Origin: Trichosphaerium sp. ATCC 40318
Lineage: Eukaryota; Protista; Tubulinea
Length of the DNA: 64,000 bases
NCBI GenBank assembly: GCA_038496445.1
Contig: JALMLS010000448.1
Span: 248,001-312,000 of the forward strand
Direction of reading: 5' to 3'
The first letter of the stretch is position 1. Each line of letters starts with the position of its first letter. Made by a program: the position numbers and the translations under genes. Under the pieces are notes generated by a model. The model saw nothing but the letters and a program-made list of their open reading frames with translations, ran no database searches and had not been told where the DNA came from. Of this stretch, positions 1-56,260 are shown one piece after another.

Positions 1-1620
<1,620 letters not shown>

Positions 1621-1715
1621 GGTACAAACAAAACGAAATACGCTGTTAATATGTATTCACAGATTGGGACTTATGCCACCAGTACTTAATTGGCACAAAT
1701 TTTATAACGGTAAAC

Positions 1716-1723
1716 TTCCCGCC
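1716..1723 (+). promoter_or_regulatory. E2F-like element TTCCCGCC immediately upstream of the NDC80 ATG, in a ~100-bp bidirectional promoter
   Basis: Resembles the TTSSCGC E2F core and NDC80 is a cell-cycle gene; motif only. Confidence 0.3.
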
Positions 1724-4267
1724 ATGTCATACGTGCCGTTGCAAGATATATCCAACGAACCTGTTAACAATCGCCGGGGCTCAATTAGCGGTAAACCGCG
1801 CAGAAGAACTGTTGCTTCGAGAAATGATCGCAGACAAACCATATCAACCTTTGCACAACGTAATACAAAAGCACGAAAGCGCTCTAATAGTAAAGGAAGA
1901 AGATCAAGACAAAGTACTCGTCCTGTAAGCAATTCAAACAGACGCCCTTCTCTCAGCAGACGCGCAACGCTATCTAGAAAAGTACACGACCCTCGAAATT
2001 TAAAAGACAAACGAACAAAGCTGAAATACATCAAACTGGTCAGACGTTACCTCGCAGCGAAAGGAGGACCAGAATTAACGCAAGCGCAACTAGCTAGAGG
2101 ACCTAGTACTAAAATGTGTTGGTGTATAACGGAATTTCTTTTTCAACAAGTGAACGGCGGAGCACAGTTTTCAGATGACGATAAAAAACGACCTGAAGAA
2201 CTAACGGCTCTAATGCAATTATTCGGGTACACTTTTCTACTTTTGGCGGCTTTTTTCTTCTTTTCAAATGTTTTGACGGTTTTTTTAACAGATACCCTTT
2301 CAACATACCAAAAGCCACATTAAAGGCTCCAGCTACACCTCACGCATGGGTACAATTACTCAGCTTCCTTGCATGGCTCGTACAAGTACTTGAGGTAACG
2401 TAACACGCTTTTTTCGAATTATATTCTAACGCGTTCTTTTAAGTGCTCTGAAGAATGTCAGGCTGATGAAGATATTGATAGTGGTGATATGTGGGATGAT
2501 ACATATTTTCTAAAGTTCTTGGCTCCAGCTTACCGTAAGTCTTGCGCATTCACTTTATTCTCGTTCATCGTTCGCTAACCTCCTTCCTTTCAGTTGATTT
2601 TTTGCGTACTGGAACAGAAGACAATGAAGGCCTTGCTCCTGTACTACAACACCTTGATGAGAGCAAAGCAGATTGCGAGAGTCAAATCCAAGTTTATGAA
2701 ACAGAGGAAGCGTCTATCAGAGACACTATTGAAGTTCTGAGGACCTCCAACGTAAGTACCAAAAAATTTTCAATTGTTTTGTCACGTGATTCTGATGTGG
2801 TTTTTTAGGAACGTTTGAGTGTCTATGAAGCTGCAACAAAACAAATGCAACTAGACCAAGCTAAATTTCGCGGTCTTTGTGAAGAACTTGAAACGTACTG
2901 CGTTCAAGGAGAAGAAAAGTATGAAAAACATAAGCTAAGACTACAGGCACGTCAATTGCAATTTCTTTGTACTGTCCGCTTATATAGAATCTCTAGGAGG
3001 CGAAAGCAATCAACCGACAACTACTTGAGCGACGCGAAAGAGCTGAGAAAGCATTAAAAGCTCAAAAAGCCCAAGAAATCAACGCTGAGCGTATGTTGAA
3101 AGAGCGTACATCTCTCAAGCAAGCTTTGGCTACTGTACAAGACAATAAGGTACCACCTCTACATTTGTTGCTTTTATGCTTTGCCCTCTTTGTTTCTGGA
3201 AACCGCACGTGTTTATCACGTGGATTTCTTTATTTATTTCCGTGCCTCGAACTTAACTTTTTTTTCAAGCAAAAATTGAATAAATACGCCTGGGAAGAGG
3301 AAATGCTTGTTGCACAACGTTACCAAGATGTCGAAGAATTGACAAAGACCTATTCATTTAAGGCTAGTGAATTGAGACTTATTCCTAGCACAGCAAAGTT
3401 TGCCGATGGCAAGAACTTTGAGCTCAAGTACGTTTTTTTTTTTCGTTTCATTTTATAGTTTCATCAAAAATCGCTCTTGTGCTAATGTCTCTTTAGGCTC
3501 CAACCAAACAAAGACCCTATGCTCAGCCAAGATGTTAAAAAAGTCCTCCAACCTCAACTGAGGGAACACCTTGCAACCCTACAGTACGTTGATTTTCTTG
3601 TTTTTTTCGTTTTTATCCTATAAATAAGTACTAAATCCATTAATTTAGAACTACTATCCAAGAATTGAAAGAGCAATTAGTTGACCTAACAGCGCAAGCT
3701 ACTGACCTTGAAGAGGATAATGGAATAAAAGAGCGTGAATATCAGCAGATAGCTGATAAGGAATCACGTCTACAAAAACAACTTGTAAAGGTACAAATTG
3801 TTCTTCACGCTACATGTGTCATGTGATTCTTCTTTTTTTTGTGATAAAAAAATGTACTCACACTAGTATGTTAGTTGCGAAGAGAACATGAAGACACTGT
3901 AACCCATAGCAAATCTAAAATTGAAAGACTCAGGTCTGATACTAAGAATGCTCGTGCTCAAATGCGTTCAGACGTAAAACGAAGCTCTGATCAAGTTGAA
4001 CAAGCAGAGAATGCGTATGTCAACCTATATTTTCCCTTGTGAATGACACTCGTTCTCATGAATTTATTTAGATTAAAAGAGACGCAACAAACATGTCGTA
4101 AAGAACGTGGAGAGTTTGAAAATATTTTGACTATTAAGATTGATTTATTGACCAATCATAAGGCTTATATTGAGGATTGCTTGCGTATTCTTCACCTTCG
4201 TGTTAAGAGTGTATACGATAGGGTTTGTCCTGATGAATCACAACATGAGTGCCTCCGTTCTTTCTGA
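1724..4267 (+). CDS. NDC80: Kinetochore protein NDC80/HEC1 (about 11 exons)
   Basis: Arg/Ser-rich basic N-tail, then DPRNLKDK...GPSTK...FGYPF...APATPHAWVQLLSFLAWL (Ndc80 CH domain) and a long coiled coil. Likely start MSYVPLQDISN at 1724; stop TGA 4265-4267. Confidence 0.88.
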
Positions 4268-22049: not shown

Positions 22050-25000
22050 ATGGCAGAGGGTACGCAACGTCACAAAACCATAATTTTGTAGAGCTGTTGT
22101 TTGTATTCACAACAAACAAACTTTAAACAGCAAACTTGTTGGAACTCGCTTTCTAAGCACTTGTTTTTTACCACAACCGAAAGAAATCGCTTTTACCTGA
22201 TTGCTTTTTGATCGTGCTAACTGCTTTAAAAGTTCAAACTGAACAGAAGCCGGAAACAGAGGTAAAGCCAGAGGCAGTTGAAACTAAAGAAGAAACAAAG
22301 GCGCCTGCTGATGCTGAACCAAAAGAAGAGCCAAAACCAGCAGCTGAGGTAAAACCTGCAGAAGAACCAAAGGCAGAGGAACCAAAACCTGCTGAGGAAG
22401 CAAAGCCGGCAGAAGAGCCTAAAAAGGAACCTGCAGCAGCCCCAGCTGCTGAAGAGAAGCCTAAAGAGGATCCTAAACCTGCCGAAGAAGCAAAACCAGC
22501 TGAGGAACCCAAAAAAGAGCCAGAAAAGAAACCAGAAGAGAAACCTGCAGAAGACAAGCCTGCAGAAGACGCTAAAGCTGCTGAAGATAAGCCTGAAGAA
22601 ACGAAAGAAGCAGATAAACCAGCAGAAGAACCTAAAGCTGAAGAAAAAAAAGACGATGAAGCGAAACCAGCCGAGGAAGAGAAGAAACCTGCTGCAAAAG
22701 CTGGGGTACACAACAAAAAAAAACCCAAAACGTTTTTTCTTTTTTGGCACCACGTGATTTTTTTAAAAATGTATAACCATTGTGACTCGGTTTTAGGGCT
22801 TTAATCCATTCGCTGCCGCTGCTGCGCCTGCTGGATCGACGCTTGATGCGCCTTTAAAGGCCATTCGAGCGGAATCTGATAAAGACAAGCAAATTTCACA
22901 AAGTTTCGACTTGATAAGTAAAACAGGCACGTGAACACACTTTGTTTTATGTAATACCGCGATCCTGAGGTGCTCATTATTTTTTTTTCTCTAGATATTG
23001 AAGGCATGAAAGAAGCAGATTATGGTCCTTTTGGTGAGTGTCCACACGTGTGAAATTAAGTTTTCTGAGTGACTAGCTCTACTTGCAGAAGCTTTTAATT
23101 CCTTTTGCGCATTTACTTAATTTTTATTAGATGCCCTGGTCGTTCTTTACTCCGAGTTACTCACTGCTAAATATAAACCTATTGCTGATAAACTGTCCAA
23201 GTTTGCTGATAAGGTATAAAAACTATTTTTTCTGGTATTCAGGTTTACAAGTAACATTTTCTAGGCTGGCGGTGAAGCTTCAGATGATGCCAAAAAAGCA
23301 AAAAGAGCTTTTGAGAGTTTCGTTGATCCACCAGCTGGCGCTCCAATGGCTCCACCACCACCACCAGCCCCTGGTCCAGTACGTCATATTATATTAGGTG
23401 TTTTTAGTAATAACCATTTCTACTAGCCTCCACCACTTGCTATAAAGAAGAGACGTGGTGGTCCAAAGAAGGTACAGCACTTTTTAATGTAATTTAAAGA
23501 AAACTTACGTAAAATAGGGCTTCAATCCATTTGCTCCTCAAGGAGGTGCCGGTGGTAGAGGAGGTCTCCTTGCTGCTATCAGAGGAGGAGCTAGTCTTAA
23601 AAAGACATCAGCCAACCCTCGTCCTCCTCCAAAATCGAGTAAACCTTCGAACCCAACAGACTCCCTGGTTGCTATGATCGCTGCTGGTGTACGTTTTTTC
23701 TAAAAAGAGCCTTCCTCTAAGAAGCTTTAGGTTAAACTGAAAAAACGTGGTCCAATCGAAAAACGAAAGCCGGTAGAGAAGTCAGTACCAGCATGGGCAC
23801 AACGTGGTGGTTTGCGTAAAACAAAATCGACAGTACGTTTAACGCAACTTGTCTGTTTTCTTCAGCTTTTGTTTGATATTCTCATTCTTTTCTGTTTTTT
23901 TTTCTAAATTCGTTTTTTTGTTTAGTCGAACTTGGATGGATCAAAGAAGGAAGAGCCTGAGATGCCAGCTTTCGCTGGTTTACTCAAAAAGACTAAGAGG
24001 GAACCAAGGCCAAAACCAACAGAAGAAAAAGCTCCAGGATTCACATTCCAACTTCGAAAAACTCAATCATCAAGACCACCTCCAGAAAAGAAGGAAGAAG
24101 GAAGCACTCAAGTCAACTTCCTTTCTGGTTTGCGTAAAACGAACCGCACACCAGCTCCTAAAACAGATAAAAAGGAGGAAGAAAAGCCAGCCTTCTTGTC
24201 TGGCTTCAAGTTGCGTAAAGCAGGCAGCACAGCTGCTCCAGCTGCTAAAACCGAGACGAAATCTGCTACTGTTGATTTCAAAGCTGGTCTTCGTAAAACA
24301 ACGACAGCACCACGTACAGTTGAGAAAAAGCCTGCCACGTCTTCTGGCACTATCGATTTTAAAGCAGGGTTGAAGAAAACATCTACAGCACCACGTACAG
24401 TCGAGAAAAAGCCTGCTACGTCTTCTGGAACAATCGACTTTAAGGCAGGACTCAAAAAGACAACGACACCTGTTGCTAAGAAAGAGCCTGTCAAGACGAC
24501 AACGACTACAGTTGATTTTAAGGCTGGTTTGAAAAAGACAACAACACCTGTCGCTAAGAAAGAGCCTGCTAAGACTACAACAACTACAGTTGATTTCAAA
24601 GCTGGCTTGAAAAAGACGACGACACCTGTTGCTAAGAAGGAACCTGCCAAAACAACTACTACCACTGATTTCAAGGCTGGTTTGAAGAAGACTACTCCTG
24701 TTGCCAAGAAGGATGATACTGATAAGGATACAAAGAAATTACTTTCTGATCTTGGTGGTGCTCTTAGAAGTACAACTCAAGGTAAAACTTTCAAATATCC
24801 TTCCATCATTGTTTTATATTTACCCTTTCTTTTCAGCTAAGGAGGCTGGAGCGAAGACTACAACGCCTGCACCTGCAAAAGTAGAAGCGAAGAAACCTGA
24901 GCCGGCTAAAGTAGAACCGAAGAAGGCAGAGCCAGCGAAAACTGAACCTGCAAAGGTAGCTGCTCCAGCTAAGACTGAACCGGCAAAGGTAGAGCCAAAG

Positions 25001-25195
25001 AAGGAAGAACCGAAGAAACCTGAACCAAAGAAGGAAGAGCCTAAGAAACCTGAGCCTAAGAAGGAAGAGCCAAAGAAACCTGAGCCAAAGAAGGAAGAAC
25101 CTAAGAAACCAGAGCCTAAAAAACCAGGGAATACTCCAAGGAAGAGCTCCAGAGGTACTAACCCATGGGGTGTTAAGTTGAAGAGTTTGAAGTAG
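22050..25195 (+). CDS. Low-complexity actin-associated protein: E/K/P repeats, NPF motifs, poly-Pro, WH2 domains and tandem DFKAGLKKT repeats
   Basis: Exon 1 ATGGCAGAGG then gtacgc; GRGGLLAAIRGGASLKKT (WH2); two GFNPFA; six DFKAGL[KR]KT; EPKKEEPKKP repeats; ends NPWGVKLKSLK*. Confidence 0.8.
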
Positions 25196-25459
25196 ATGTA
25201 AACAAAATAAATAGATTGCAACGCCAGTTTTATAGGTTTTTTTTTCACCACTAGATCTTGGCACGTGGGTTATCTTAAAGGTTATTTTTAACAAAAAGAT
25301 AGCAAGTACCACGTGGACATTGTTTACAACTAACGCGAAAAGAAGTCAACCGCTAGTTTTAACCGAGTTAAAACTTGCTATTGCGTTCGCTTTTTTACGC
25401 TAAGTCAAGTTGACTCATTCCTAAATAATTTATTTGAAAGGAGAATAGCTCTCACAGCA

Positions 25460-29253: not shown

Positions 29254-32200
29254 TGCCAACATGTTATTTATTTACAAAGTGTTTATTTAACATTCAGTAT
29301 GTTACTTCTATTGTATAACCCCTAATAACGGGTTTCTCTCTTCCCTGTTGTGACGAGGGCAAAAGCAATAAAATATCTTCTTGAAAAGAGGATAAAGTAG
29401 TGCTGCACACTTACCAGCAAGCATACCAATGTTGTACATTAGCGCAATTATAACTAAGAAAGAGAATACTAATTGAGCGTCTCCAATATTTTTTCTTTGA
29501 ATCTCTTGTTCATACGATGATCCTGACTTGACGATAATATCAAGTCTAAATAAAATACATTAATAAAAACCAAGAAAAAAAAAGGAAAACAACATCAATC
29601 AACAACCCATCAACTGTTTCCCCCTTTTGTTGTGTAACATTGGATGTAAGAAACAAGGGAAATGTTGAGACATATTTTGATAATTGCACTTGAGTGATGC
29701 CCAAGTAACAAGAAAATCAGGAAAAGGTGTCAAAGTTGTTGATGATGTTGGTTTGTAGATAGAACGTACCTAAAGTTGTATTCTTCCACATTTTGTAAAT
29801 CAAAACCATGTACTTCTGGAGCTTTAATATAACTATGTTTTATAATAGTATGCGCAAAGTATCCTACAACAAAGACAAAGTCACAAGTTTTGTTCAGATA
29901 ATTTACAAAAAAAAACCCACTCACCTGTAATGTCTTCATTAGTTATACGTATTATGGGAGTGGATTCTACCAACAATTCTATCTTTGCACTTGGTAGAAA
30001 TCTACCAACATCAGATATTGTCATAAGCTCCTGTGAACCTTGTAGAAAAGAAAACATTAGCACTGTCACAACCAAAACAATAATCAGCCTTAAATGTACC
30101 TTTTGTTGTAAAGTTTATCTTGATGGCAGCAAAATTGGGAGACCAACACTCTGTTGAAAGAAATGAAAAACTCATATTTGTACCATCTTTAAAGCTTTGA
30201 TCAGATTCTAGAAATTGTATAGCATATGTGTTTTCTGCATACATTTCAAAATCAACATTTTGACTGTTAGTATTAAAAGAATACCAACTGCGGTCTGACT
30301 TGTTACAATATGTAACATTCATACCGACCCACTCAATTGTGACCTCAGTGTATGAATTACTATTGGGTAAAAGTGTTATTGTTCAGAAACATGTTGAGAA
30401 GCTTACCTTTGGAGGTGTTTGTAAAAATCCAAAACATTATGAGGTGCTGATGCCAACAACTCACTTGATGTTTCTCGTAACACATTCAATGGCCTTATAG
30501 ACTCTGCTCCAATGATCATTGGTTCTCTTTCAAAGTCAAAGTAGATGTACAGCATGCACACAATACCAATAATACAAAAACCAATGGTACATATTGTAAT
30601 CAAACCTCCGATCAAGTTACCTTTTGTTTGATACTTACCATTAACAATCAGTGGTGTTTTATTCATATCCATAGACTTGAGCTTATCTAATAGCCATGTA
30701 TTACCATTTTTGGTACATACAAGTACGATCAACAGCAACAGCAAAATGAGAGAAAAATTTGCTATTGTCATCCAAGGAGCAGGTCCGTTCTTGTTAAAGA
30801 GTTGATCAAGGAATTGCTTTTGTACTGACTTTGGTGTCAACTCTGTAAAAGGGAACCTCAGTGACTGTGCTGATTCTGCTAAAGTTTCTTCATCAAAATT
30901 CATTATAGATCCAGGTGGACATGTTTTCTTTTTTTTTGGTGTACAAAGCGCACACGATGACATAGTTTCGTTTTTGTAATAACCTAGAAAAAAATAAGAA
31001 ACATAAATTGTTGATGTTCTCCTTTCAATAACACACGTGTTTCAGTTGAAGTATGATGTTTATAAAAGACACAACATTGTTTATGGTACTTGGAGAAGTA
31101 ATCTTACGTTATTCTTACCTTGTTTGCAGAAAGTGCAAGGCATGAGGTTTAGTCTAGTACTATCAACCTCTTTTCCTTGTCCGCAAGAAGCTATAAAAAC
31201 ATCATTTCCTGCATAATGTGGCCGTTGATTGAAACCAACACTAATTGTAAGACGGCAAGTTAAAATCAAAGTGTAGAAAATAACACGTGCTCTACTTTGG
31301 GCTTTGCTCCCTTCTCAATGCTTAATGATCCATTTACTGAACTTCCAATATATAAGCTTCCTTTTACTTGTACAACACGCTGTATAGGACGAGGACCAAG
31401 GGTATCACGAAATGGATAGTACGCATAATATTCAGATATTTTTTTAAGGCGGGCTTGTTTACTTGTCGGACTGCTAAGTGTCCAGCAGTACAAACAATAC
31501 TTGCTCTTTTAATAAAATTTGTTAGCACATATAGTAAGGTATTGAACATACGTAGTTAAGATCATACAGATAACAAGATAGGTGTAAATCGCAATAAGAA
31601 CCATAGTGTTCACTGGGTCGTGACCAAAGAGCAAACTCTGAATAATAAGCTTGACTAAAGCAACCAAGCGTTCTATCAAGACAAAAATAAAATGGAATGA
31701 CCCACAATACATCGTATGCACTTATTACTACAAGTGCATCGTTTTGTATTCTTTCTAACAATAATAATGAGATGTAAAACTGAGGAAGAACTTTACTTTA
31801 TACATGAAAAAAAAGTTGGTTTTCGAAACACCACACAACATTACGCTTCTAAATAACAAGTGTAGAATTTGATGAAGACTAAAATACTATGGAAAGGTTG
31901 ATTTTTATGGTGTAGTGACCCAAAAAAGGGTAAACGAAAAAAACATCAAATAAACCGTACTGGCATAGACTGTAAAGTCTTGTGGAATTGAGTATCCTTC
32001 AACCTCAATTTTATAAAAATATGACCTATTCCATCGACCATTCAATGTTTTAACCATTGATAAAATACCCAGTTCCTCGTCATTTTTAACACCAATCAAC
32101 TATGTCAGATTAATGAATCGATATTTTTTAAAGTACAAATGAAATAGAAGTTCTAACACACAACGTACCCATAGACGCTCAAGTTCATACTCATATCGTA

Positions 32201-32860
32201 TGTTTTTAATAACAAATCCTTCTTCTTCATATTCAATAAAATGCCATGAGTTAATAGTACCACCCGAAACATTAAAAGAAACAGCACGTGTGAATAAATT
32301 AATCACAACTGTATCGTTCCATGCTTCTACAATTGAATCAAAGTGGTATGATGTTCCATTCATAATACTACTCCATTTCACAGTTGACTTTTGCACAAGT
32401 TGTTTCACGTCATCCTCCCATTCCCAAATTTCTACAGATTCACGGAATGTAAAAAAGAAAGCGTCTTGCTGACACCCCAGTTAGCACGTATTCATCCCAA
32501 TTAATGGTTAAAGAAGCTTTGAAACGTACATTCACTCTAGCGACGCTTATTATGGGAGAATAGAAGCGTGTTGTGTTACAACCGAAATAACCATTGTAAA
32601 CGAATGTGGCTTTGTGCTTATTAGGTTTTGCGATAGTTTTGTATGCGTACCATTGTTATAAAGGGCTATTACGTTCTGGAATCGGTCTTGAATAAACTGT
32701 GATTCTTAAAAGGTATTAGTACGCTTAATATTAGACCATACGCCTCACCTAATGGAACCAATGTTGGTTTATCGTCTTTAAACATACATTGCGCTTCTAA
32801 GCCCTCAAAAATACTCACAGCGAGCAGAAAAACAATCAATGTACACTGTCGCTGCATGTA
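29254..32860 (-). repeat. Inverted segmental duplicate A, copy 1 (partner 50262-53982 on +)
   Basis: Long near-identical reverse-complement match including introns and 3' UTR, interrupted by divergent patches. Confidence 0.97.
29308..32857 (-). CDS. Gene A1: signal peptide, large ectodomain, Cys-rich repeat, 3 TM helices, cytosolic ExxxLL tail; unknown receptor-like protein
   Basis: MQRQCTLIVFLLAVSIFEGLEA signal; CGQG..CTFCKQG..CALC..CPPGS; TMs WMTIANFSLILLLLLIVLVC, LITICTIGFCIIGIVCMLYIYF and LVFSFLVIIALMYNIGMLA; ends EERNPLLGVIQ*. Confidence 0.8.
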
Positions 32861-33136: not shown

Positions 33137-34150
33137 TTATTGACTATCACGCTTTGCACAGTTGCCACTGTTAGGATTGCAGTACAAGTTTGGCATTAGC
33201 CTTCCAGTCCATTTTGCTCTTAATCCAGCGATAGCATTATGGTTTGAGGATTGATCCCAAAAGCTAAATCCGAACTTTTCTCGATGAAAAAATGGACCAA
33301 CATGTCCTCCCCAGAATCCCTCAGCAATTAAAGTATTGCACAAAGAGCGAGACCACTTTAAAGACCAAGGAATGTTTGACTTTGAAGCACCAAAAGCACC
33401 TTCAGCGCCCTGTACAGTAGTACATGGAGGGTGACCAGGAGGCAAGTATGGTACTTGATCTGCAGGCGAAGGAATGAAAGTAGCACCACAGTGCGCGTTT
33501 CCAGATCCTTGGCAAGGACCGTATGCGCTTCCTGTAGTACCAGGGTATGCAGCGTCCCACATTGTAGTATGCTTACGTTGTTGGCCCCACAAGGCACGAG
33601 CGAACATACAATGATCTTTCTTCACTTGTCTATCAGCACTAGTGTATCCTAAACAACAATGTGAGCTTTTTGATTAAAACGCTACGTGATTAGAAAACGT
33701 ACCAACAAGTGCTCTTACATGGTTAATCGCAATACGATGCCATTCATCGACTTCTGCTTTGGTTGGGTTTGCATTGTCGGCAAAAGGTTGATGTTGGTAG
33801 AACACCTCGCGAATACCTCTAATACGATCGACACTTGGACAAATAGCTTTCCAGAACGCTCTTTTAGACATTGTAGAAGGGTCATACGTTGTTACACCGT
33901 CCCATTCTGAGTGACGCCATGCATTTTGTGAGATCCAACCGACGCCATCAGGGTCATGAGCGGTGTTTACTCCTGAAATCGCTTTTGCGTTCATTATCGA
34001 CCAATCTGCTTGGTCTGGGGTGTATTGTACAAGAAGTGTTGCTGCAGTAGACAGTACAAATATACATAGTAGTAACGTTGCTATCAAAGAGTTAGAATCC
34101 TCGCAGTTCATAATTCTATTTTCGTTTTCATAGGTACCGGAGGTTTTCAT
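33137..34150 (-). CDS. Gene B1: secreted Cys/Trp-rich protein, divergent CAP/SCP-like; no GPI signal (3 exons)
   Basis: Exon 1 MKTS, intron, ATLLLCIFVLSTAA signal; AINHVRALVG..AHCG..AEG..GGHVGPF..FGFSF; ends CAKRDSQ*. Confidence 0.8.
33169..34030 (-). repeat. Inverted duplicate B core, copy 1 (862 bp; partner 55283-56144 on +)
   Basis: Same-length, near-identical reverse-complement match with an identical internal intron. Confidence 0.97.
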
Positions 34151-34748
34151 TTCAGAAATAGGTGTTATCACGTGTTGTTGTTTTGAAGTGTTGTTTGTAT
34201 GATAATTGTATAAATGATATGTAGTCTGAAAAGTGTCGAGTTTTACCCGTGCACAATGTCACTGATCGCGCTATAAATAGTTGTAAATACTAAACTGTTA
34301 TTCCAATAAAATGAAGCGTGCTAGCTGTAGCTAGTGTGCCGCTATTTACATAAAAACAAAATTGGGTACTAAATATGATAAAGAATCCTGCAGTACCGAA
34401 ATAATCATCGCAATGGGTAGGTATGTTTTATTAATATGATTTATGAACAAGAAGTTTCGCAGTATGACATATTCTTTATGGATAGATTAGGAGATACTAT
34501 CACAACCAAAAACCACTTGGAAAACACGTGAACCAAACGTAAGAAGTACATCTCTTTTAGGACCACCTTCTAACGAATCTTGCGGGAAAAGATCGAAACA
34601 GTTTGTGTTTTTTTCGGACTGTTTGGGGTGTATAGTATCAGTTAGCAGCTTTGATTTTATCCATACTTGATAACCCGTTACCTTTTTAGGGGAGAATTGG
34701 GAAATGATATATTTCTGCTTGGTATCTGTTCGTGATATGCCCGCACCC

Positions 34749-43258: not shown

Positions 43259-46200
43259 ATGTTTGATGCCGCACGGGCATCATTCGCTGGTACAAAGACC
43301 AAGGTGTTCAGGGAGATCCAGATCCCTGTTGGTGTCACTTCACCCAAACTCCAAGAATATTCACTCCCACAGCCACGAGATTATAATATTGAGCCAATTG
43401 CTACTGTAGCAGAAAAAGCGGGTGGATTTACGTTTGCTCAAGGCAATCGGTATATAATATGGTACTGACGCTATTGCGCGGCCAGAAGTAACAAAAAATA
43501 GGCGGGTAAGTGGACAAACGCTCCAGCTAGAAGAACTGTACGAAAATCATGATCTACACAACAGCGCTGTATCGTTGAGGTTCCCCGGTGCGTCAATACT
43601 AGGTTTTAGCACGCTTTCTGTTTATTTTTATTAGAGACGTTAGTTGGTTCAGTAGCTATATCAGAGGATCCCACAAGTGCGCACGAAGGTACAATTGTAA
43701 CAGTAGTAGCCTTCAGTGGCACAATATACCACTTTCGATTCTATCACCCCAAAGTACGCTAAAACATACACAACGCGACAACTCAACAAAATATAGTCTA
43801 TGGAAGAAAAACATTCGAGAGACGCAACACCTGACTCAATATTTGCGTATATACGTTCATCAGACTTTGCAGTACGTATTCTATGCTTTATTTAACAAAA
43901 TAAAACTCTTTTTTTCAAATTTTAGCGCGAGCTTTTCAAAAAAAAATCGAAAAAATTCAAAAACTCATTTATACTAACTCGTAATCTACTGTAGCAATCA
44001 CTGGTAAGGCGAGATGCATTAAATGGTGCTAGAGCAGTTAGTATTGCAAGCTATTCAATGTATTCTGTCGCTGTAAGCGCTAGTAATGGGTAAGATGTTT
44101 TTCTTTTGTTTTTTTTTCTTTTGTTTTTTTTTTTCAGTTGTTGGCTTTCTATTATTTATCTAATACTGCCCCTAAGGTCGGTGTTTATCATGAAGTTTCA
44201 AGTACGAGATAGTGAAAGCTTATCGTGCAATACAAAGGCTGAACTTAAGCAATCAATCCTCACATCATTGTTTCAACGCCGTTCGCCTATAAAAGATATG
44301 AAGATCCATGAGTGTACAACAATGCGTACTAAATTAATCGTAACACTGGATGAAAACCATAAACTTTGTATTTGGGATGCAGAAAGAAGAGTAAGTGAAG
44401 ACCAACATCATTCTTTGAAATGTCAAGTTCTGATTTTTTTATTTTTTTCTTAAAGGCTTGCATTACTTCAAAAGTCATTCAATGGGATTCATACGGTTCT
44501 GGTAAAGACTTACCAAAGGCACAAGGTATTAGATAATTTTTGGTGTAATTTATACTTATCACGTGCCATACACGTGAGAAAAAAGAGAATCAAATTTAGG
44601 TGTGGTAAATACTGACGCTGTTATTGTAGAAATCTTGGATAGCAGACTAGGCTTGTATTCGTTTGACAGCAACCTTTTCTGTTTGGTTGTTTATTTATGT
44701 CGTGAAGATTCTTCCCAATTTCAAATATACAGATGTGCTATTAATAATAACCAATTAAATGCACAAATTCATGCAGTATCATATTACGAACCAGACAGGC
44801 TTGTAGATTTTGCAGTAGATGATGGATTCTTATGGGCAATGTGGTGTGAAAAGTACGTACAAAATTGTGGAAGTTACATATCTCAAAAAACTAATATTTC
44901 TTGTCTCTGTAGGCACGCTGGAAATACTCTGTTCTATAACTTGAAGAGACTACATTTTGAATTATCTGATCCTATCCAAAAGATCGATTCTATGGATTGT
45001 GTTGCACACAAAGCTGTTTTAAACGTAAGTACCCTGTAATTTGATAGTATCTAGCTTTTTGTTGATGCTGACTCACGCCTGTTTAGAATTGGCATGGTGC
45101 TTCTTTATCAGAGCCTAGTGAAGTAGTAGAGCTTTTAGACGCATTATACGACGCTGAGCATCCTCCAGAAGATATGTTTTTAGAGGTAGAATATTAGCTG
45201 TTTATTAAGTATTAATTCCAACCATCAAGGCAATTTTTCATCCAAATCGCTTCTCTAAAGAATGCATATCTATCGCTTTATATGAATATAATGGTGTTAA
45301 TATGAGTGGTGCCACTTTATACATGCTACGCGAAGCTGCTGTACAAGCAGTAGCTAACAGAGTACGAAACAGCCGTCAGAAAAAATACAAAAACAGGCGA
45401 TGCTTTTGTTCGTTATTCGAACAGTTGCACTTCTTCTCCGATTTCTCTCTTACACTCAACTCTAATATATTTTTCTGTAGGTAGCAGTAGCAACAGAAAT
45501 GGGTGATTACGTTACAGGCTATGATGCATTCTTTAATCAATGGGCATCATTCTTACAATGCTGCTTAACTGCTTACCTTAAGGAATCACAACCTCTTGGT
45601 ATCTTTTGTTCGGGATCAGTTGGACCAGTTATTGTTAGACAAGGAGCTCTATCTTTTTTGAGAAACTGTAATACCTTGGAGGGATTTTATATTCAATTCT
45701 ATTGGAATAGCAATGGTGGGTTTAGTAGCGTTTCAACTGTTGAGAGATATATGCTTTCTCATGGATATGCTCATACTGAGCATATGGATTTACTTCAGCT
45801 CTTGACTTGCGCACGTGTGATTCATAGCCAGGTACCATATTTTGTGGTCAATGACGTTTGAAAGCTTGCTTACACATGTGTAGGTTGGTCATGTTGGTAT
45901 TGCTGCGTTTGAAGAAGATATGTTGTATCTTGGAGTAAGAGATGCAATAGTTAGGCCTGTAACACAACTTGTGTGTCCATCACAGTACGTCAATTAGTAT
46001 TTTTTATAGGGATGGCTTCTTACTTAAACTTGTTTTAGAGCAGACGCTGGTGATGAAAAAGGTGAACATGCTAGAGAACCTTTCTTGCCGCCTTTTATAC
46101 GTAAATTCAAGTCTATAAAAAGACCAATTGAAACTCTACGACTCATTCTTAATCTACTGGAGGACTTTGAACTCAACGGAGAGTATGCGTTTCTAACCAT

Positions 46201-49200
46201 CTTGGAAAAAGTAAATTCGCGTTAATATCTTCCTTTTGACACAAACGTGATAGTTTCCAACAGTGTTGTTAATAGCCTTGTTTTTTAGGGAACTGAAAAA
46301 CTTTGGTAATCATCCTTCAACTGCAAGCTTTTGTGATCATTGCATATCTCATGGTGTCCGTCAAATACTTCGGTCACGTTATGTGCTTAGTCTTAGTGTT
46401 GCACTTCTTATTTACCTATTGGCTCGTATTCGATTAGTGGTACCAAAAAAAAAGTTACTATAAGACATAAAGTCTAACTATTATGTTTTACAGAGTGGAC
46501 TTAGACTTAATGAATATAAAGTGGTTATGAATGAATTAGAACCAAAAGTATCAAAACTGTTGCGTACATTCTATGTTCTCAATTGGTTATCAAAGCAACG
46601 TATTGAAAATACAACAATAGAGTACGTTCCTTATTCTCTACTTTTTTCCAGGTTAAAGACATTTGTTAACCTTCATTTCAAGCTTTGATAATTTGGCTAC
46701 AATGACGAATAGACACTTAACAATGACTGGTACACGTACTAATGGTATTCAATCGTCTGCAAAGACTGATGGCATGGATTTCTTGCATCATTACTTCTTG
46801 AAGAGGAATAAAGCAGTAAGGCTTAAAATACCAGAGGATGAACAAAAACAATTTCGTTCATCCATGCAACTCATAGCACGAATGCAAGTAAAAGTATTAT
46901 TTGCTTATCACAACAGCAATACATCAGTTATTGAGCATTTCAGTGATAGCAAACAATTCACACTCATGCATGTACGTCATTTTTTTTAACAACTGTTAAA
47001 GCTTTAAAAAAAAAAACCCATACTCACAGAAGATTCTTTAGGATTTTATGTCATTGCTAGCAGACACAACTGGTTTTGGGTGGCATTATCTTGGTGAAAG
47101 TTATCTTCATTTACGGATGTATGCTAAAGCATTTGATTGCTTTGTTAAGGCGTCATGGGATGTTGGTGCGTTTTAAGAACTTATTTTTGTCAATAATTAT
47201 TTCAGCCAAATAGTAATGACTTCTCTGTAGAGAATGGACGTCCTGAGCTTTATCGTTTCCTACTCGATCGTGGTTATAAACCTAGAGCAACTAATATATC
47301 AATGGGAAAGGCTTTAAACGTACGATACCAGAGCATGAAAACAACGTCTTTGGATTCCTTTTTTTATTTCATATCTTTATTACAAACAACTATTATTCTT
47401 TAATCAATAGTATGTCATTATTGTCAATAACTTATCTATTGTTCTTAGATTATTTTGAATCACAAGGGGACAGATATTATTGATGAGACGTTACCAAAAC
47501 ATCGTGGTGTTCCATTGAGAAGAGCAAGATATACATACCTTAAACATTACTGGTATGAGGTCATTAATTTATTCGCAAGCGCAGAACAGTATTCTTTTGC
47601 TGTTCAAGCAGCTCATCGTGCGTTGATGGCCACAGACCCAAAAGACGAAGTTGCACTTGTACGCTATATATTTTTTCTTATTTTTTTCTTTCTTTTTCCT
47701 TGTACCACTTATCAAAAACTAACAAATACTGTTTTTTAGACGCAACTGTGGACTATCATATTTTTACGACAACTGGAACTTGGAGAATATGATGACGCAT
47801 ACATTGCAATTAATGCAAACAAAGCAATGTACGGGTTAATGATAACATTGAATGATGCACATCATTCAACTTAAGCACGAATCCAATTTTTTTGTTTGCC
47901 AAAAGTCAACGCAAATGTTTAACTTGAATGATACGCACAATAACCTACAAGTAGATGAGTGTAATTTCTTTTTATTAATTTTTATTGTATAGGTGTGCAG
48001 AAAGGCTTAGACGATTCCTAGTTGTGATGGCTGAGAAAGGAGAATGGAGAAAGATGATAAGGTACCCATTTTTGGGTATGGAAGATCAAGTACACAAAGA
48101 GCTATTGATGAGGTACAATAAGACACATAAAATTGATTTCCATCTCATTTTCCTCTTAGAAGCCGTAACAGCGATGTAAGCGAGCGACCTAATTTTTACC
48201 ATATTCTATACTCCTTTCATTCCGTAAGAGGAAACTACAGACAAGGTACAGTACAAATAATAATATTGAAAGACGATTGCGGGAACTACGCTGAAAACTT
48301 TCTTTTTGTACTTGCTTTTCTAAAGATGATTTAGCTGCTTCGGCTATGTATGAATATGCCGATAGGTGCTCTATTGAGACACATATGTTGGGAATAGAAT
48401 CCATGGAACGTCAGTCACAAGTACGTTAACTTTAAAATAGTTTTCTAGTTTGGAAAGCTACTCACTGGTTTATGTCTTTATTTCTCACATCCTCCTAGGG
48501 TCTTGTTTCTGCTATTAGCGCTTTATCACTTGCAAGAGATGATTTTGCATATGTACTGATGAGACCAAGAGATACACTTATAATGAAGCGACCTGTCTCG
48601 CCAAAGCGTAAATACTACGCTGGCAAAGAGTACATGGCCGAATTAGATGCAACAAAATGTACGAAAACAATTCCGCTCACTACTAGGGTTGTATCGCATA
48701 TGTGGTTTACTTATCCACCATTTCTTGTAGTTACTCCTGGCGTTGTTGTTATCACTATTGATGAGATACGGCGGAAGCAACTTATTGTTAGTTGTAGTAT
48801 AAAACTTGCAAAAAAAAATCTAAAGCAAGATGAAGACTCTCGTGCGTGTTCCCTTTATTTTTTCTTTCTTATCAAACTCTAATAAGTATCTTACGCTGTT
48901 ATGTAGCATCTATTCTGGGTAATGACAACCCATTGCATTTGTGTGATAAATTGCTTGAGCAAGGATTCATTGATGAAGCTTTTTCTATGGGCAAGTTGTT
49001 TAAGTTTAATCATGATGAAATGGCAAAGATATTCGTATATATGACGAATATTTGCTTGGAGCTTGATGGAGTTGATCTTGAGGCAATAGAATCTCCTTGG
49101 GCTCTTCGATTAGGTATGTATTTTAGCTATTTTTTGACTAAGCACGAGTCTCTTTCCCTTTGTTTTGGAGTTTCACTTTATTTCTTTTGTACTCTCGCTT

Positions 49201-49915
49201 CTGTGATTATTAACGGTTTTCGTTAGCTCGTATATACCAAAAACCTAGTGTGGTAGCTTGGATGAGGTTGAGAAAGTATTTAGAAGACTATAATTCTCAG
49301 TACACAAACTTTCAGTGCGTCCTTTATTTACAACTTTTTCTGAAGTTTTACTTGGAATTCTTTTGTTTTGTTCGTGTTCGTTTCATTTTATGGCTCTAAC
49401 TGATTTATAGCTACCACTTGGTAGCCGCAAAGAGGATACTTACAGCAGCTCCTGATACAAGATTAAAGCCATGGTTAATGAATGCGTTCAAACGTGAAGG
49501 TTCAGAAGATAAATCACATTTACTTATATCTCTTCTCATACAATTCGAGTCATACGAAGAAGCCTGTAGGCTTGGTATATATATGTTCCAAAATGCCAGA
49601 GAGGTACTTACAAATTTTGACATACACACATGCATACTAGCCAAGAATATTACGAAAAAGGGAAAAAAGACAGGCTCGAAGCCTTGTTTCTTCATTTTTT
49701 CTTCTTTTTTTTTTTATCTGATCCATTTATTTTCTTAGGCTCTAAGTGATTCTAAGACGACTTTCATATCTTATAATGTCGTTGATAATATGGAGAAACG
49801 TATCAATACATTCATGAGAAATAATACCTCTGATCAAGCAAGAAAGGATATACTAGAAAAAGATATTTGGCCTGATTACAAAGCCGCAAGAGATGCTTAC
49901 TTCAGGTCCTTGTAG
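43259..49915 (+). CDS. NUP160: Nucleoporin NUP160/Nup120 (about 30 exons)
   Basis: NRYIIWRVSGQTLQLEELYENHDLHNSAVSLRFPGASIL (Nup160 propeller start), VTLDENHKLCIWD, alpha-solenoid with LELGEYDDAYIAI, LRRFLVVMAE and AASAMYEYADR. Confidence 0.85.
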
Positions 49916-50261: not shown

Positions 50262-53200
50262 TACATGCAGCGGCAGTATACGTGGATTGTTTTTCTGCTC
50301 GCTGTGAGTATTTTTGAGGGCTTAAAGGCGCAATGTATGTTTAAAGACAATAAACCAACATTGGTTCCATTAGGTGAGGCGTGTGGTCTAATATTAAGCG
50401 TACTAATACCTTTTAAGAATCAAAGTTTATTCAAGACCGATTCCAGAACGTAATAGCCCTTTATAACAATGGTACGCATACAAAACTATCGTAAAACCTA
50501 ATAAGCACAAAGCCACATTCGTTTACAATGGTTATTTCGGTTGTAACACAACACGCTTCTATTCTCCCATAATAAGCGTCGCTAGAGTGAATGTACGTTT
50601 CAAAGCTCCTTTAACCATTAATTGGGATGAATACGTGCTAACTGGGGCGTCAGCAAGACGCTTTCTTTTTTACATTCCGTATCTGTTGAAATTTGGGAAT
50701 GGGAGGATGACGTAAAACAACTTGTGCAAAAGTCAACTGTGAAATGGAGTAGTATTATGAATGGAACATCATACCACTTTGATTCAATTGTAGAAGCATG
50801 GAACGATACAGTCGTGATTAATTTATTCACACGTGCTGTTTGTTTTAATGTTTCGGGTGGTACTATTAACTCATGGCATTTTATTGAATATGAAGAAGAA
50901 GGATTTGTTATTAAAAACATACGATATGAGTATGAACTTGAGCGTCTATGGGTACGTTGTGTGTTAGAACTTCTATTTCATTTGCACTTTAAAAAATATC
51001 GATTCATTAATCTGACTTAGTTGATTGGTGTTAAAAATGACGAGGAACTGGGTATTTTATCAATGTCTAAATCGTTGGATGGTCAATGGAATATATCGTG
51101 GTCCTACGAAATTGAGATAGTTGAAGGATACTCTATTCCACTAAACTTTACAGTCTATGCCAGTACGGTTTATATGATGCTTTTTTTTGTTTGTTTTTTT
51201 TTACTTTTTGGGTCTCTCACCCACACAACTCAAAGGTTTTCTCATGCTTTTGTTTATTTCCATCATTGATACCATGGTTGTTGTTGCGTTTATGAAAGCG
51301 TAGTGCTTTTGTAAGTGTGGTTTCAGAACCAACATGTTTACTCGATACTAAAAAAGCACAACTACTTTTTCAATATATCTATATTCTTTACGTCTCATAT
51401 TTATTTGTTTTAGAGAGAATGTATCGTAAATATGCACATCTAATTATAAATTCTTATGACGTAATTACCATAAAGCCATTTTATATTTGTCTTGATACAG
51501 CACTTGAATGCTTTAATCTAGATGAATATGCAAATTTTATTCTTTTTGACAGCCCGGATCAGTACATTGGATATTATTGTGACTTACACCTACCTTGTAG
51601 TATGTATCAAAATAGTGTACGTTCAACTAGTTTATTCAATCTTAAGGCTAACAAGTTTTTGATTAACAGAATGAGTATTGCTTGTATTGCTGGCTAAACA
51701 GTACAACAAACAACCAAATACAACTTGTTCAGATGGGTGTTTATTCACTAGGGAGAGCATTTTATCCTTCTCATGATACCCTTGGTCCTCGTCCTATACA
51801 GCGTGTTGTACAAGCAAACGGCAGTATATATATTGGAAGTTCAGTAGATGGATCGTTAAGCATTGAGAAAGGACCAAAACCCAAAGTAGAGCACGTGCTA
51901 TTTTCTAGTAACAGTGTTGATTAACTTACTGTTTTACAATTAGTGTTGGTTTCAATCAACAGTCGCATTATGCAGGAAATGATGTTTTTATAGCTTCTTG
52001 TGGACAAGGAAAAGAGGTTGATAGTACTAGACTAAACCTTATGCCTTGCACTTTCTGCAAACAAGGTAAGAAAAACGAAATTTACTCTGTGTTTTTTTGA
52101 AATCTGTTTTGTTTTGTCTCGTCAGACAGTTTTGCTTGATTACTTCCAAGTACCATAAACAATATTGTGTGTCTTTTATAAACATCATACTTCAGCTGAA
52201 ACACGTTGTGTTATTGAAAGGTTTCTTATTTTTTTCTAGGTTATTACAAAAACGAAACTATGTCATCGTGTGCGCTTTGTACACCAAAAAAAAAGAAAAC
52301 ATGTCCACCTGGATCTATAATGAATTTTGATGAAGAAACTTTAGCAGAATCAGCACAGTCACTGAGGTTCCCTTTTACAGAGTTGACACCAAAGTCAGTA
52401 CAAAAGCAATTCCTCGATCAACTCTTTAACAAGAACGGACCTGCTACTTGGATGACAATAGCAAATTTTTCTCTCATTTTGCTGTTGCTGTTGACTGTAC
52501 TTGTATGTACCAAAAATGGTAATACATGGCTATTAGATAAGCTCAAGTCTATGGATATGAATAAAACACCACTGATTGTTAAAGGTAAGTATCAAACAAA
52601 AGGTAACTTGATCGGAGGTTTGATTACAATATGTACCGTTGGTTTTTGTATTATTGGTATTGTGTGCATGCTGTACATCTACTTTGACTTTGAAAGAGAA
52701 CCAATGATCATTGGAGCAGAGTCTATAAGGCCATTGAATGTGTTACGAGAAACATCAAGTGAGTTGTTGGCATCAGCGCCTCATAATGTTTTAGATTTTT
52801 ACAAACACCTCCAAAGGTAAGCTTCTCAACATGTTTCTGAACAATAACTCTTTTACCAATAGTAATTCACAAACTGAGGTCACAATTGAGTGGGTCGGTA
52901 TGAATGTTACATATTGTAACAAGTCAGACCGTAGTTGGTATTCTTTTAATACTAACATGAAGAGTTTACACCACAACTTTGACACATACGCAGAAAACAC
53001 AAACGTTACACAAGGAATAATATCCTTTCAAAGCTTTAAAGATGGTACAAATATGAGTTTTTCATTTCTTTCAACAGAGTGTTGGTCTCCCAATTTTGTT
53101 GCCATCAAGATAAACTTTACAACAAAAGGTACATTTAAGGTTGATTACTGTTTTGGTTATGACAGTGCTAATGTTTTCTTTTCTACAAGGTTCACAGGAG

Positions 53201-53982
53201 CTTATGACAATATCTGATGTTGGTAGATTTTTACCAAGTGCAAAGATAGAATTGTTGGTAGAATCCACTCCCATAATACGTGTAACTAATGAAGACATCA
53301 TTACAGGTGCGTGGGGTTTTTTTTTGTAAATTATCTGAAAAAAACTTGTGACTTTGTCTTTGTTGTGTAGGATACTTTGCACATACTATTATAAAACATA
53401 GTTATATTGAAGATGGCCTGAGTGCTTCAGAGTTAGAACAAAATAATGAAGAATACAACTTTAGGTACGTTCTATCTACAAACCAACATCATCAACAACT
53501 TTGTCACCTTTTCCTGATTTTCTTGTTACTCGGGCATCACTCTCAAATGCAATTATCAAAATATGTCTCAATATTAACCTTGTTTCCTACACCCCATGTT
53601 ACACAACAAAAGCGGAAACAGTTTGATGGGTTGTTGATTGATGTTGTTTTCCTTTTTTTTTCTTGGTTTTTATTAATGTATTTTATTTAGACTTGATATT
53701 ATCGTCAAGTCAGGATCATCGTATGAACAAGAGATTCAAAGAAAAAATATTGGAGATGCTCAATTAGTATTCTCTTTCTTAGTTATAATTGCGCTAATGT
53801 ACAACATTGGTATGCTTGCTGGTAAGTGTGCAGCACTACTTTATCCTCTTTTCAAGATGATTTTTTATTGCTTTTGCCCTCGTCACAACAGGGAAGAGAG
53901 AAACCCATTATTAGGGGTTATACAATAGAAGTAACGTACTGAATGTTAAATAAACACTTTGTAAATAAATAACATGTTGGCA
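50262..53982 (+). repeat. Inverted segmental duplicate A, copy 2
   Basis: Reverse-complement match to 29254-32860. Confidence 0.97.
50265..53928 (+). CDS. Gene A2: paralog of A1, receptor-like 3-TM protein
   Basis: Same exon structure as A1; ATG 50265, TAG 53926-53928. Confidence 0.8.
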
Positions 53983-55157
53983 GCTGTTTAAAATACACTC
54001 TGATGCGACTCAACATTTTGATTTTGCTTCAACGTTAAACTTGTATACTTGTTCTTTCAAATACCATAAAAATATGAGCCAACATATCAGGTGCTCAATC
54101 TTATTTACTTGTTTTGTCGCGTTCAATGCGAAATCTAGCCAGTTGCGCATACTTGATAATAATCTAAGGATTACGAAAAGCACGTGAAAGTTGAAGTGAA
54201 AGTTAAAAATCCTTTGCTCGAGTAACATCACTGTCTTCCATCGAAAAACTGCCAAACGCATTACTTTAATTGATGATAAATATGAATTATACCCATTGAT
54301 GTATGTAAAGGATTGTACGCCTACTTCTCAATTGTTAGGTATTTCAAATACTCATTAAACGGGTCTTTATTCCGGTACTGCGCTAGCGACAGTACAAAAT
54401 CCGCTAGGTAGATTATTAAGGAGACTTTTTATTGTAGAGAATCTTATCCAATAAAAAGAGCGTCAGCAGTATCTTTTGAATCACGTGAGTTTTTATTTGA
54501 CAAGTCTTTTCGTATTTGTCACTCTTATTATGTACTTCTCTATTATAATTTTTAGCAATGTAGAAGCGTTCGCACTGTGCGATGTATTCTAAAGTCAAGA
54601 ACTTTACATTAACTTTTGGGCTTTGCCTTCGGGTTTTTAGCGATTATTGGGTGACTGCTGGGGGAAACCCAAAACTATTGGTCTGCTCAAAACCATTTAT
54701 AAGACAACTGTATGAGTAGACAAAGCGTTTGACCACTAGGGAGATTTTGTGTGTGGAGTTATTCACATTCGTACGTTTCACCTACAATCTTGTGTGTACT
54801 ATTTTGCGCTGAGTGGCTGTCGAATGCGTAGGCCTATTTTCCCTGTAATTGATTGTATAATAAGAGATGTTTTGATGAAACGTTTCTACCGTTTCTGATG
54901 TTCCTAATGTTTTTCTTGTTAGTAAATGAGTTTAAAGCTTCCACTGGGCGCTCTCTCGAGCATGGCAACCTTTGATTACAGCGCCTTTTTCTTCAAAAAT
55001 ACGTACGGATGTGAATAACTCCACAAATACCGCAGGCTTGTTTTATGTAACTAGCGCACTAAAAGTAAAAATCCAAACATTTTCAGAAAACTCACAAAAA
55101 ACACCATTTTTAAAACACAGAACTGACAAAACATCACGTGATAAACCATTACCCAAA

Positions 55158-56260
55158 ATGAGTATTTCAGGTCAGACATAAAGATATTTTATCTCGACAA
55201 AACTAACACCCTTTCGCTAGTGCTGCTAGTTTTTTGCCTCTATGTGTCGTCTGCTATGGCTGCAGAAAATACCCTAGGGCTCGTACAATACACCCCAAAC
55301 CAAGCAGATTGGTCCATAATGAACGCAAAAGCGATTTCAGGAGTAAACACCGCTCATGACCCTGATGGCGTCGGTTGGATCTCACAAAGCGCATGGAGTA
55401 GCTCAGAATGGGACGGTGTAACAACGTATGACCCTTCTACAATGTCTAGAAGAGCGTTCTGGAAAGCTATTTGTCCAAGTGTCGATCGTATTAGAGGTAT
55501 TCGCGAGGTGTTCTACCAACATCAACCCTTTGCCGACAATGCAAACCCAACCAAAGCAGAAGTCGATGAATGGCATCGTATTGCGATTAACCATGTAAGA
55601 GCACTTGTTGGTACGTTTTCTAATCACGTAGCGTTTTAATCAAAAAGCTCACATTGTTGTTTAGGATACACTAGTGCTGATAGACAAGTGAAGAAGGATC
55701 ATTGTATGTTCGCTCGTGCCTTGTGGGGCCAACAACGCAGGAAAACTACAATGTGGGACGCTGCATACCCTGGTACTACAGGAAGCGCATACGGTCCTTG
55801 TCAAGGATCTGGAAACGCGCACTGTGGCGCTACTTTCATTCCTTCGCCTGCAGATCAAGTACCATACTTGCCTCCTGGTCACCCTCCATGTACTACTGTA
55901 CAGGGCGCTGAAGGTGTTTTTGGTGCTTCGAAGTCAAACATTCCTTGGTCTATAAAGTGGTCTCGCTCTTTGTGCAATACTTTAATTGCTGAGGGATTCT
56001 GGGGAGGACATGTTGGTCCATTTTTTCATCGAGAAAAGTTCGGATTTAGCTTTTGGGATCAATCCTCAAACCATAATGCTATCGCTGGATTAAGAGCAAA
56101 ATGGACTGGAAGGCTAATGCCAAACTTGTACTGCAATCCTAACAATAATGGGTGTACAGGCGCCCGAGACGCCAACCAACAAAGTGCCAGCAATCGCCTT
56201 GTTTTCACTTTTTCTTATGTAGTTCTTTTCTTTGTAGCACTCGTATTAGCACACGCTTGA
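55158..56260 (+). CDS. Gene B2: paralog of B1 with C-terminal GPI-type signal (3 exons)
   Basis: Exon 1 MSIS, intron, VLLVFCLYVSSAMA signal; core near-identical to B1; tail DANQQSASNRLVFTFSYVVLFFVALVLAHA*. Confidence 0.82.
55283..56144 (+). repeat. Inverted duplicate B core, copy 2 (862 bp)
   Basis: Reverse-complement match to 33169-34030. Confidence 0.97.

Follow-up and report, generated by a model that had tools for sequence, protein, structure and literature searches.

We analyzed a 64-kb stretch of the genome of the protist Trichosphaerium sp. ATCC 40318 (contig JALMLS010000448.1, positions 248,001 to 312,000; the whole stretch is called the window, and all coordinates refer to it), which carries two copies of a gene for a predicted membrane glycoprotein. 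Repeat finding and self-blastn of the window, which has a GC content of ~37% and short GT-AG introns, revealed an inverted duplication (29254–32860 versus 53982–50262) and a second inverted pair that is not colinear with the first (33169–34033 versus 56144–55280). We refer to the gene of the first pair as gene A and to that of the second pair as gene B. The two copies of gene A, A1 and A2, are inverted paralogues lying ~17 kb apart, and the gene order is swapped between the loci, with B preceding A at locus 1 and following it at locus 2. Homology between A1 and A2 extends from 3 nucleotides (nt) upstream of the ATG to ~55 nt beyond the stop codon; the flanks align at ~50%, as expected of unrelated sequences. 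Within these limits, the copies are nearly identical except in four sharply bounded islands, V0–V3. The gene models are as follows.

50265–53928, plus strand: gene A2, 12-exon model, 815 amino acids, spliced open reading frame open from ATG to TAG.
50265–50399, 50506–50592, 50706–50951, 51021–51162, 51414–51616 and 51670–51890, plus strand: exons 1–6 of A2 (exons 1–3 uncertain).
51944–52065, 52240–52816, 52863–53128, 53190–53306, 53371–53464 and 53691–53928, plus strand: exons 7–12 of A2.
29308–32857, minus strand: gene A1, same 12-exon model, 809 amino acids, reading frame open.
32857–32723, 32616–32530, 32414–32169, 32099–31961, 31754–31552 and 31505–31291, minus strand: exons 1–6 of A1.
31240–31119, 30983–30407, 30359–30100, 30038–29925, 29863–29770 and 29545–29308, minus strand: exons 7–12 of A1.
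51891–51943, plus strand (A2), and 31290–31241, minus strand (A1): intron 6, a putative GC-AG intron required for a common frame.

A first-pass annotation, made from the sequence alone, had claimed that the exons it inspected stay open; for both copies this holds under the common 12-exon model, and all of the peptides that it quoted are present in the frames it gave. The A1 and A2 proteins are identical at 697 of 817 positions, and the reading frame is backed by the synonymous bias of the differences between them. For exons 1–3, exhaustive enumeration yielded more than 1600 open splice paths per copy, and the N-terminal part of the model is therefore provisional. The donor sequence GTACGT was found at 4 of the 11 introns of A2, GTACGG and GTACAT were also used, and a CTAAC-like motif precedes several acceptors.

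We computed identity along a global alignment of A1 and A2. Windows of 40 nt were 97–100% identical except at sharply bounded places; identity was 96.5% outside the patches and 67% inside them; 244 of the 344 mismatches fell in 731 of the 3573 aligned sites (20% of sites). The longest identical run was 218 nt, compared with a maximum of 140 nt in 2000 shuffles (P ≤ 0.0005). The three patches of the first-pass annotation are real and sharp in this sliding comparison, but the first of them consists of two islands, V0 and V1, which makes four in all. The islands and the segments around them are listed below in A2 coordinates on the plus strand, with A1 counterparts alongside; TM denotes the transmembrane segments described later.

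50265–51064, plus strand: backbone, 97.8% identity.
51065–51120, plus strand: island V0, 72% identity, inside exon 4, one 3-nt indel (A1 32055–32003; protein positions ~172–199, N-terminal ectodomain).
51121–51187, plus strand: stretch of 67 nt between V0 and V1, 92% identity.
51163–51775, plus strand: island V1, comprising intron 4, exon 5, intron 5 and the first third of exon 6 (A1 31960–31406; protein positions ~206–308).
51188–51765, plus strand: core of V1, 64.5% identity.
51766–51943, plus strand: stretch of intermediate divergence, 86% identity, 3′ part of exon 6 and intron 6.
52240–52938, plus strand: backbone, 98.3% identity.
52939–53027, plus strand: segment containing V2, 69% identity.
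52957–53027, plus strand: island V2, inside exon 9, 32 of 71 columns differing (A1 30265–30201; protein positions 612–635, TM2–TM3 loop).
53028–53398, plus strand: backbone, 97.5% identity.
53399–53447, plus strand: segment containing V3, 67% identity.
53409–53447, plus strand: island V3 (mismatch span), inside exon 11 (A1 29825–29787; protein positions 721–733, ~30 residues before TM3).
53540–53625, plus strand: milder island wholly in intron 11, 84.5% identity versus 98% on either side.
53626–53982, plus strand: backbone, 98.6% identity.

The mismatches of V2 lie exactly within 52957–53027 and are flanked by 24 and 71 identical bases; identity in the introns on either side is 98% (intron 8) and 95% (intron 9). 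Similarly, V3, in which only 2 of 13 residues are identical and two 3-nt indels compensate each other, lies between introns 10 and 11, which are 97% and 93% identical. The first-pass annotation had regarded the patches as coding sequence more diverged than almost identical neighboring introns. This description fits V2 and V3 fully (introns 93–98%) and V0 on its upstream side only, where intron 3 is 97% identical and the downstream intron 4 is diverged. It does not fit V1, in which exon 5 (65.5%) is accompanied by introns 4 (65.5%) and 5 (72%) and adjoined by intron 6 (76%). Because introns 4 and 5 are as diverged as exon 5, V1 is, judged from the alignment, a block of different ancestry and not a coding patch among conserved introns. 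Outside V1 and its margin, introns 1–3 and 8–11 are 93–98% identical, about the level of synonymous sites, and intron 7 is 90.5% identical over aligned columns with 77 gap columns. Among the 11 exon differences in the intermediate stretch next to V1, 6 are synonymous. Within V1 itself, 43 of 103 residues are identical and, as had been claimed, all six cysteines are kept.

We next give the numbers of synonymous (dS) and nonsynonymous (dN) substitutions per site, calculated by the Nei–Gojobori method.

Backbone, 648 codons: dS 0.060, dN 0.015, dN/dS 0.24.
V0, 27 codons: dS 0.44, dN 0.22, dN/dS 0.51.
V1, 97 codons: dS 0.91, dN 0.40, dN/dS 0.44.
V2, 22 codons: dS 1.0, dN 0.49, dN/dS 0.48.
V3, 13 codons: dS 1.1, dN 2.5, dN/dS 2.3.

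Silent-site divergence of the islands is thus 7–18 times that of the backbone; by this measure, the islands are older at silent sites and not just fast at replacement sites, and a mosaic ancestry is therefore required. Recent point-mutational hypervariation is ruled out, since island dS is high as well. Targeted hypermutation of the adenine-specific, diversity-generating retroelement type was also rejected: in either copy, the four bases take part in mismatches at similar frequencies. A dN/dS value above 1, taken as a sign of diversifying selection, was not found in V0, V1 or V2. The first-pass annotation had itself named dN/dS below 1 with saturated dS as an outcome that would contradict its proposal, and V0–V2 display values of this kind. 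V3 alone exceeds 1, in an alignment of only 13 codons that is uncertain and saturated in dS. Relative to synonymous ones, nonsynonymous differences are more frequent in the islands (127:47) than in the backbone (22:24; Fisher's exact test, P = 0.002), but because near-saturated dS biases this test, the enrichment is only suggestive.

The islands nevertheless bear marks of coding constraint in both copies. The length differences between A1 and A2 for exons 1–12 are 0, 0, 0, 3, 0, 6, 0, 0, 6, 3, 0 and 0 nt, while those of introns include –2, 7, –1 and 2 nt. The 161–166 island codons were open in none of 5000 shuffles, and half of the aromatic positions are kept across the islands. Judging from this coding pattern, each island has evidently been maintained as functional protein in both of its versions. 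The open frames, the in-frame indels and the kept cysteines and aromatic residues therefore argue that each copy encodes a working, different ectodomain variant, and the constraint seen in both copies therefore points to purifying selection on both for most of their separate history.

According to hydropathy, the product of gene A has a signal peptide and three TM segments (457–475, 512–530 and 762–780). The predicted architecture consists of a glycosylated ectodomain of ~430 amino acids, a TM1–TM2 hairpin, a second outward loop of ~230 amino acids, TM3 and a short tail. The loop between TM1 and TM2 has 36 residues and is lysine-rich, the tail is basic, and N-glycosylation sequons are found mostly in the N-terminal part and the TM2–TM3 loop. 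In agreement with the placement of the patches by the first-pass annotation in extracellular parts, hydropathy, the sole basis of the topology, assigns V0 and V1 to the N-terminal ectodomain, and V2 and V3 to the second loop predicted to face outward or into the lumen. Its remarks that the TM segments and the 3′ untranslated region are nearly identical were likewise borne out: TM1, TM2 and TM3 differ by 1, 1 and 0 residues between the copies, and identity is 98% over the first 54 nt past the stop codon. A2 has cysteines at protein positions 40 and 120 (window ~50382 and ~50841), where A1 has tyrosine and serine; this A2-only pair in the near-identical backbone could form a disulfide specific to one copy.

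Gene A has a single recognizable relative. No Pfam family reached the threshold for any A2 exon, the V1 exons of A1 or the homologue described below, and the PDB, searched by sequence, yielded nothing beyond a weak, TM-like similarity to signal peptidase subunit 2. A HMMER search of 1.84 billion representatives returned one true relative and one spurious repeat protein. The sole relative is an open reading frame on an 8.2-kb metagenome contig (ENA ERZ25072490, 44% GC), located at contig positions 3100–4840 and ~30% identical. Its N-terminal part is not alignable; it shares the C-terminal architecture, from the cysteine repeat and the TM hairpin through part of the loop to the last TM and its basic tail. 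Neither a profile search nor a scan of the metagenome locus recovered further relatives, and the gene A family is essentially unsampled. A BLASTP comparison of A2 exon 9 with the loop reading frame of ERZ25072490 was not significant, and we do not claim the apparent insertion at V2. All Atlas scores for gene A were at most 0.89 with low recognition and are treated as leads only. One such lead (0.78) assigns an ephrin-receptor-like repeat to the Cys-rich stretch at ~364–407, whose cysteine spacing fits an ephrin-receptor-like/TNFR-type repeat by eye; the stretch is split by intron 7, and a scan with PF07699, in which it was scored as halves only, gave no match. A fainter lead (0.70) pointed to Erv41/Erv46/ERGIC3 for the part from TM2 through the loop to TM3. 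This candidate received no support from sequence, since ERGIC_N and COPIIcoated_ERV gave no Pfam match at E ≤ 10 in 52530–52814 and the loop exons.

How can a near-identical backbone and much older islands coexist in one pair of genes? The ~97% identity of A1 and A2 is, judging from the alignments, most likely kept by gene conversion. The first-pass annotation had proposed gene conversion, and conversion between old paralogues best explains the mosaic, with a dS of 0.06 in the backbone against 0.44–1.1 in the islands and flanks that cannot be aligned. Together with the rearranged order of genes A and B, these values imply that the duplication is older than the backbone divergence suggests. The levels of 98%, 92%, 86%, 84.5% and 65–72% standing side by side fit many conversion tracts of different ages, and the gene B pair, likewise homogenized only in its core, also counts for conversion. 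We propose that A1 and A2 would descend from an old inverted duplication of an orphan membrane glycoprotein gene, and that repeated intrachromosomal conversion would have homogenized exons and introns alike to ~97%. The four islands, all of them in predicted outward-facing parts, still carry a much older divergence; on the account we favor, conversion tracts that overwrote them would be removed by selection because the copies differ in ligand or partner specificity. The sequences directly show the mosaic, the difference in age between backbone and islands and the coding constraint within the islands, whereas conversion as the mechanism, the membrane topology and a selective reason for the survival of the islands are what we infer. 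We give about an even chance to the hypothesis that selection against intruding tracts has held the islands apart, which corresponds to the pattern known as a 'peak of divergence'. The first-pass annotation had attributed the patches to selection on specificity-determining sites, as in immune, allorecognition and variant-antigen genes. Selection for specificity is plausible on the sequence data, and an immune-like, allorecognition or variant-antigen role of gene A would be no more than a possibility.

Several observations weigh against selection as the keeper of the islands. For V0–V2, dN/dS is below 1 with dS near saturation, and such values do not demonstrate positive selection. The islands are not confined to coding sequence, as the V1 introns and the island in intron 11 illustrate. 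V2 and V3 measure just 71 and 39 nt, and divergence does not taper off at their edges; imported short tracts, or a mechanical obstacle to conversion, would account for this no less well than selection. GC content at third codon positions (GC3) is not significantly in excess in the homogenized parts, leaving GC-biased conversion unsupported. The AlphaFold models of the ERZ25072490 loop reading frame and of A2 exon 9 had predicted local distance difference test values of 41 and 44.5 and are unusable. In addition, each copy has one doubtful splice feature. In A2 (50649–50705; A1 counterpart 32473–32415), 2 nt are missing at ~50681, and TTG is read at the position of a TAG acceptor-like site in A1. 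Provisionally, this deletion is intronic only if the AG at 50704–50705 is the acceptor. Were splicing to use the first AG past the branch-like motif, A2 would be frameshifted unless it took an AG lying 4 nt farther downstream; depending on the AG chosen, the copies may differ by a frame-shifted stretch of ~10 residues. In A1, an acceptor AG has been lost (CAACGG where A2 keeps CAACAG), and a frame common to both copies appears to require that intron 6 be of the GC-AG type (GCACGT...AATTAG).

It is conceivable, though rather unlikely, that V0–V3 reached one copy through conversion over short tracts, with diverged family members at other genomic loci as donors, in the manner of micro-conversion in the major histocompatibility complex or of mosaic variant-antigen genes. 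Such an origin would suit the very sharp edges, the narrowness of V2 and V3 with perfect identity up to them, the high dS within the islands and the variation of their divergence from patch to patch (0.44 to ~1.1). However, neither blastn nor tblastn with each exon detected a third copy or a partial donor of gene A in the window, and only one distant relative exists in public data. Moreover, homology stops at the ATG and close to the poly(A) region, which speaks for an old age of the pair itself. In the same searches, which covered the 64-kb window, none of the extra partial donors of variable blocks expected under cassette-type antigenic variation was found.

We consider it unlikely that the islands are neutral leftovers, that is, regions not yet covered by conversion, or regions in which mismatches and indels block heteroduplex extension, in the absence of any selection on specificity. 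The frames would then be open through ordinary purifying selection on two redundant working copies. The dN/dS values below 1 in V0–V2, the diverged introns of V1 and the island within intron 11 are compatible with this explanation, as is the patchwork of tracts suggested by the stretches of intermediate age (86% and 92%). A search for a motif common to the island boundaries found none, which also suits leftovers. On the other hand, all four strong islands fall in predicted outward-facing parts, three of them inside exons, and the nonsynonymous share is higher in the islands than in the backbone. Islands of 39–71 nt between long converted tracts are also hard to obtain by chance.

A more far-reaching form of the hypothesis of selection on specificity, which we regard as improbable, is that A1 and A2 are receptors for self/non-self, mating or fusion recognition. 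V0–V3 would then form one specificity surface, and crossovers between the inverted repeats would flip the 17-kb interval, reassorting V0/V1 with V2/V3 and so giving rise to new specificities. It is very improbable that one copy is a recently disabled pseudogene kept intact-looking by conversion, with islands that are uninformative on present function: although the missing 2 nt in A2 would be coding under one plausible splice model and A1 has GG where A2 has an AG acceptor, the common model is open over 809 and 815 codons, and the unconverted islands are open in both copies with in-frame indels and conserved cysteines despite a dS of at least 0.44. An assembly artefact or collapsed haplotypes are unlikely and were rejected as well, since the match is limited to the gene bodies and the copies are separated by unique genes (Nup160 and gene B).

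The genes around the pair were annotated as follows. The gene B pair (33140–34258, minus strand, and 55145–56257, plus strand) is 97.7% identical in its mature core only, and the signal-peptide and C-terminal parts cannot be aligned. A hydrophobic tail is present at the end of B2 and absent from the end of B1.

33169–34033, minus strand: homogenized core of gene B1, 97.7% identity to B2 over 865 nt.
55280–56144, plus strand: homogenized core of gene B2, partner of the B1 core.
43603–49223, plus strand: exons of a Nup120/160-type nucleoporin (Nup160), between the copies of gene A, ending ~1 kb before the start of A2.
1562–3455, plus strand: exons of Ndc80.
23843–25345: region with internal repeats, long open frames on both strands and direct repeats 78–85% identical, with a weak Lysostaphin_N-like repeat match.

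The islands, if selection is indeed keeping them different, mark the residues responsible for functional discrimination in an uncharacterized family of surface proteins. In that case, gene A would provide a concrete candidate for recognition together with a short list of residues. Paralogue trees built from gene A would mislead, and the finding is therefore useful for annotation. A1 and A2 are a clean, textbook-type protist case of paralogues that evolve in concert but retain divergence islands: the pattern is known and the instance is new, so that the finding is not surprising in kind.

Comparable arrangements exist in other organisms. RHD and RHCE are oppositely oriented paralogues for multi-pass membrane proteins with an unrelated gene between them, and they undergo conversion in cis. 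As in gene A, their differences are kept in outward-facing parts. Unlike gene A, which is read from sequence alone, they belong to an unrelated protein family and population data exist for RH. The two-locus model is listed as reference 43 of PMC3924837.

The 'peak of divergence' in duplicated genes under conversion, the subject of the Teshima and Innan model, has been described for opsin exon 5 and others (PMC3924837). The long- and medium-wave opsins of primates resemble A1 and A2 in being paralogues tens of kb apart, with homogenized introns and most exons and a sharp exon peak of divergence (PMC3924837). However, the opsin peak has its center at two residues known to tune spectral sensitivity, and its history is proven by comparison with orthologues, whereas gene A has four islands, one of them spanning introns, and is read here from the paralogue pair alone. 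In the clustered protocadherins of teleosts, regional conversion has likewise made part of the genes more than 99% identical, and an ectodomain region thought to confer specificity of recognition stays divergent (PMC1852091). These genes form large tandem arrays of single variable exons with a GC3 excess, in contrast to the two inverted copies of gene A, which have none. Among amoebozoans, tgrB1/tgrC1 of Dictyostelium is an allorecognition locus for polymorphic membrane glycoproteins with duplication, recombination and inversion (PMC12745789). It has no sequence similarity to our locus, where gene B carries no variable islands, and the likeness is one of genomic behavior only: as with tgrB1/tgrC1, two adjacent genes, A and B, have been duplicated together with a change in their order.

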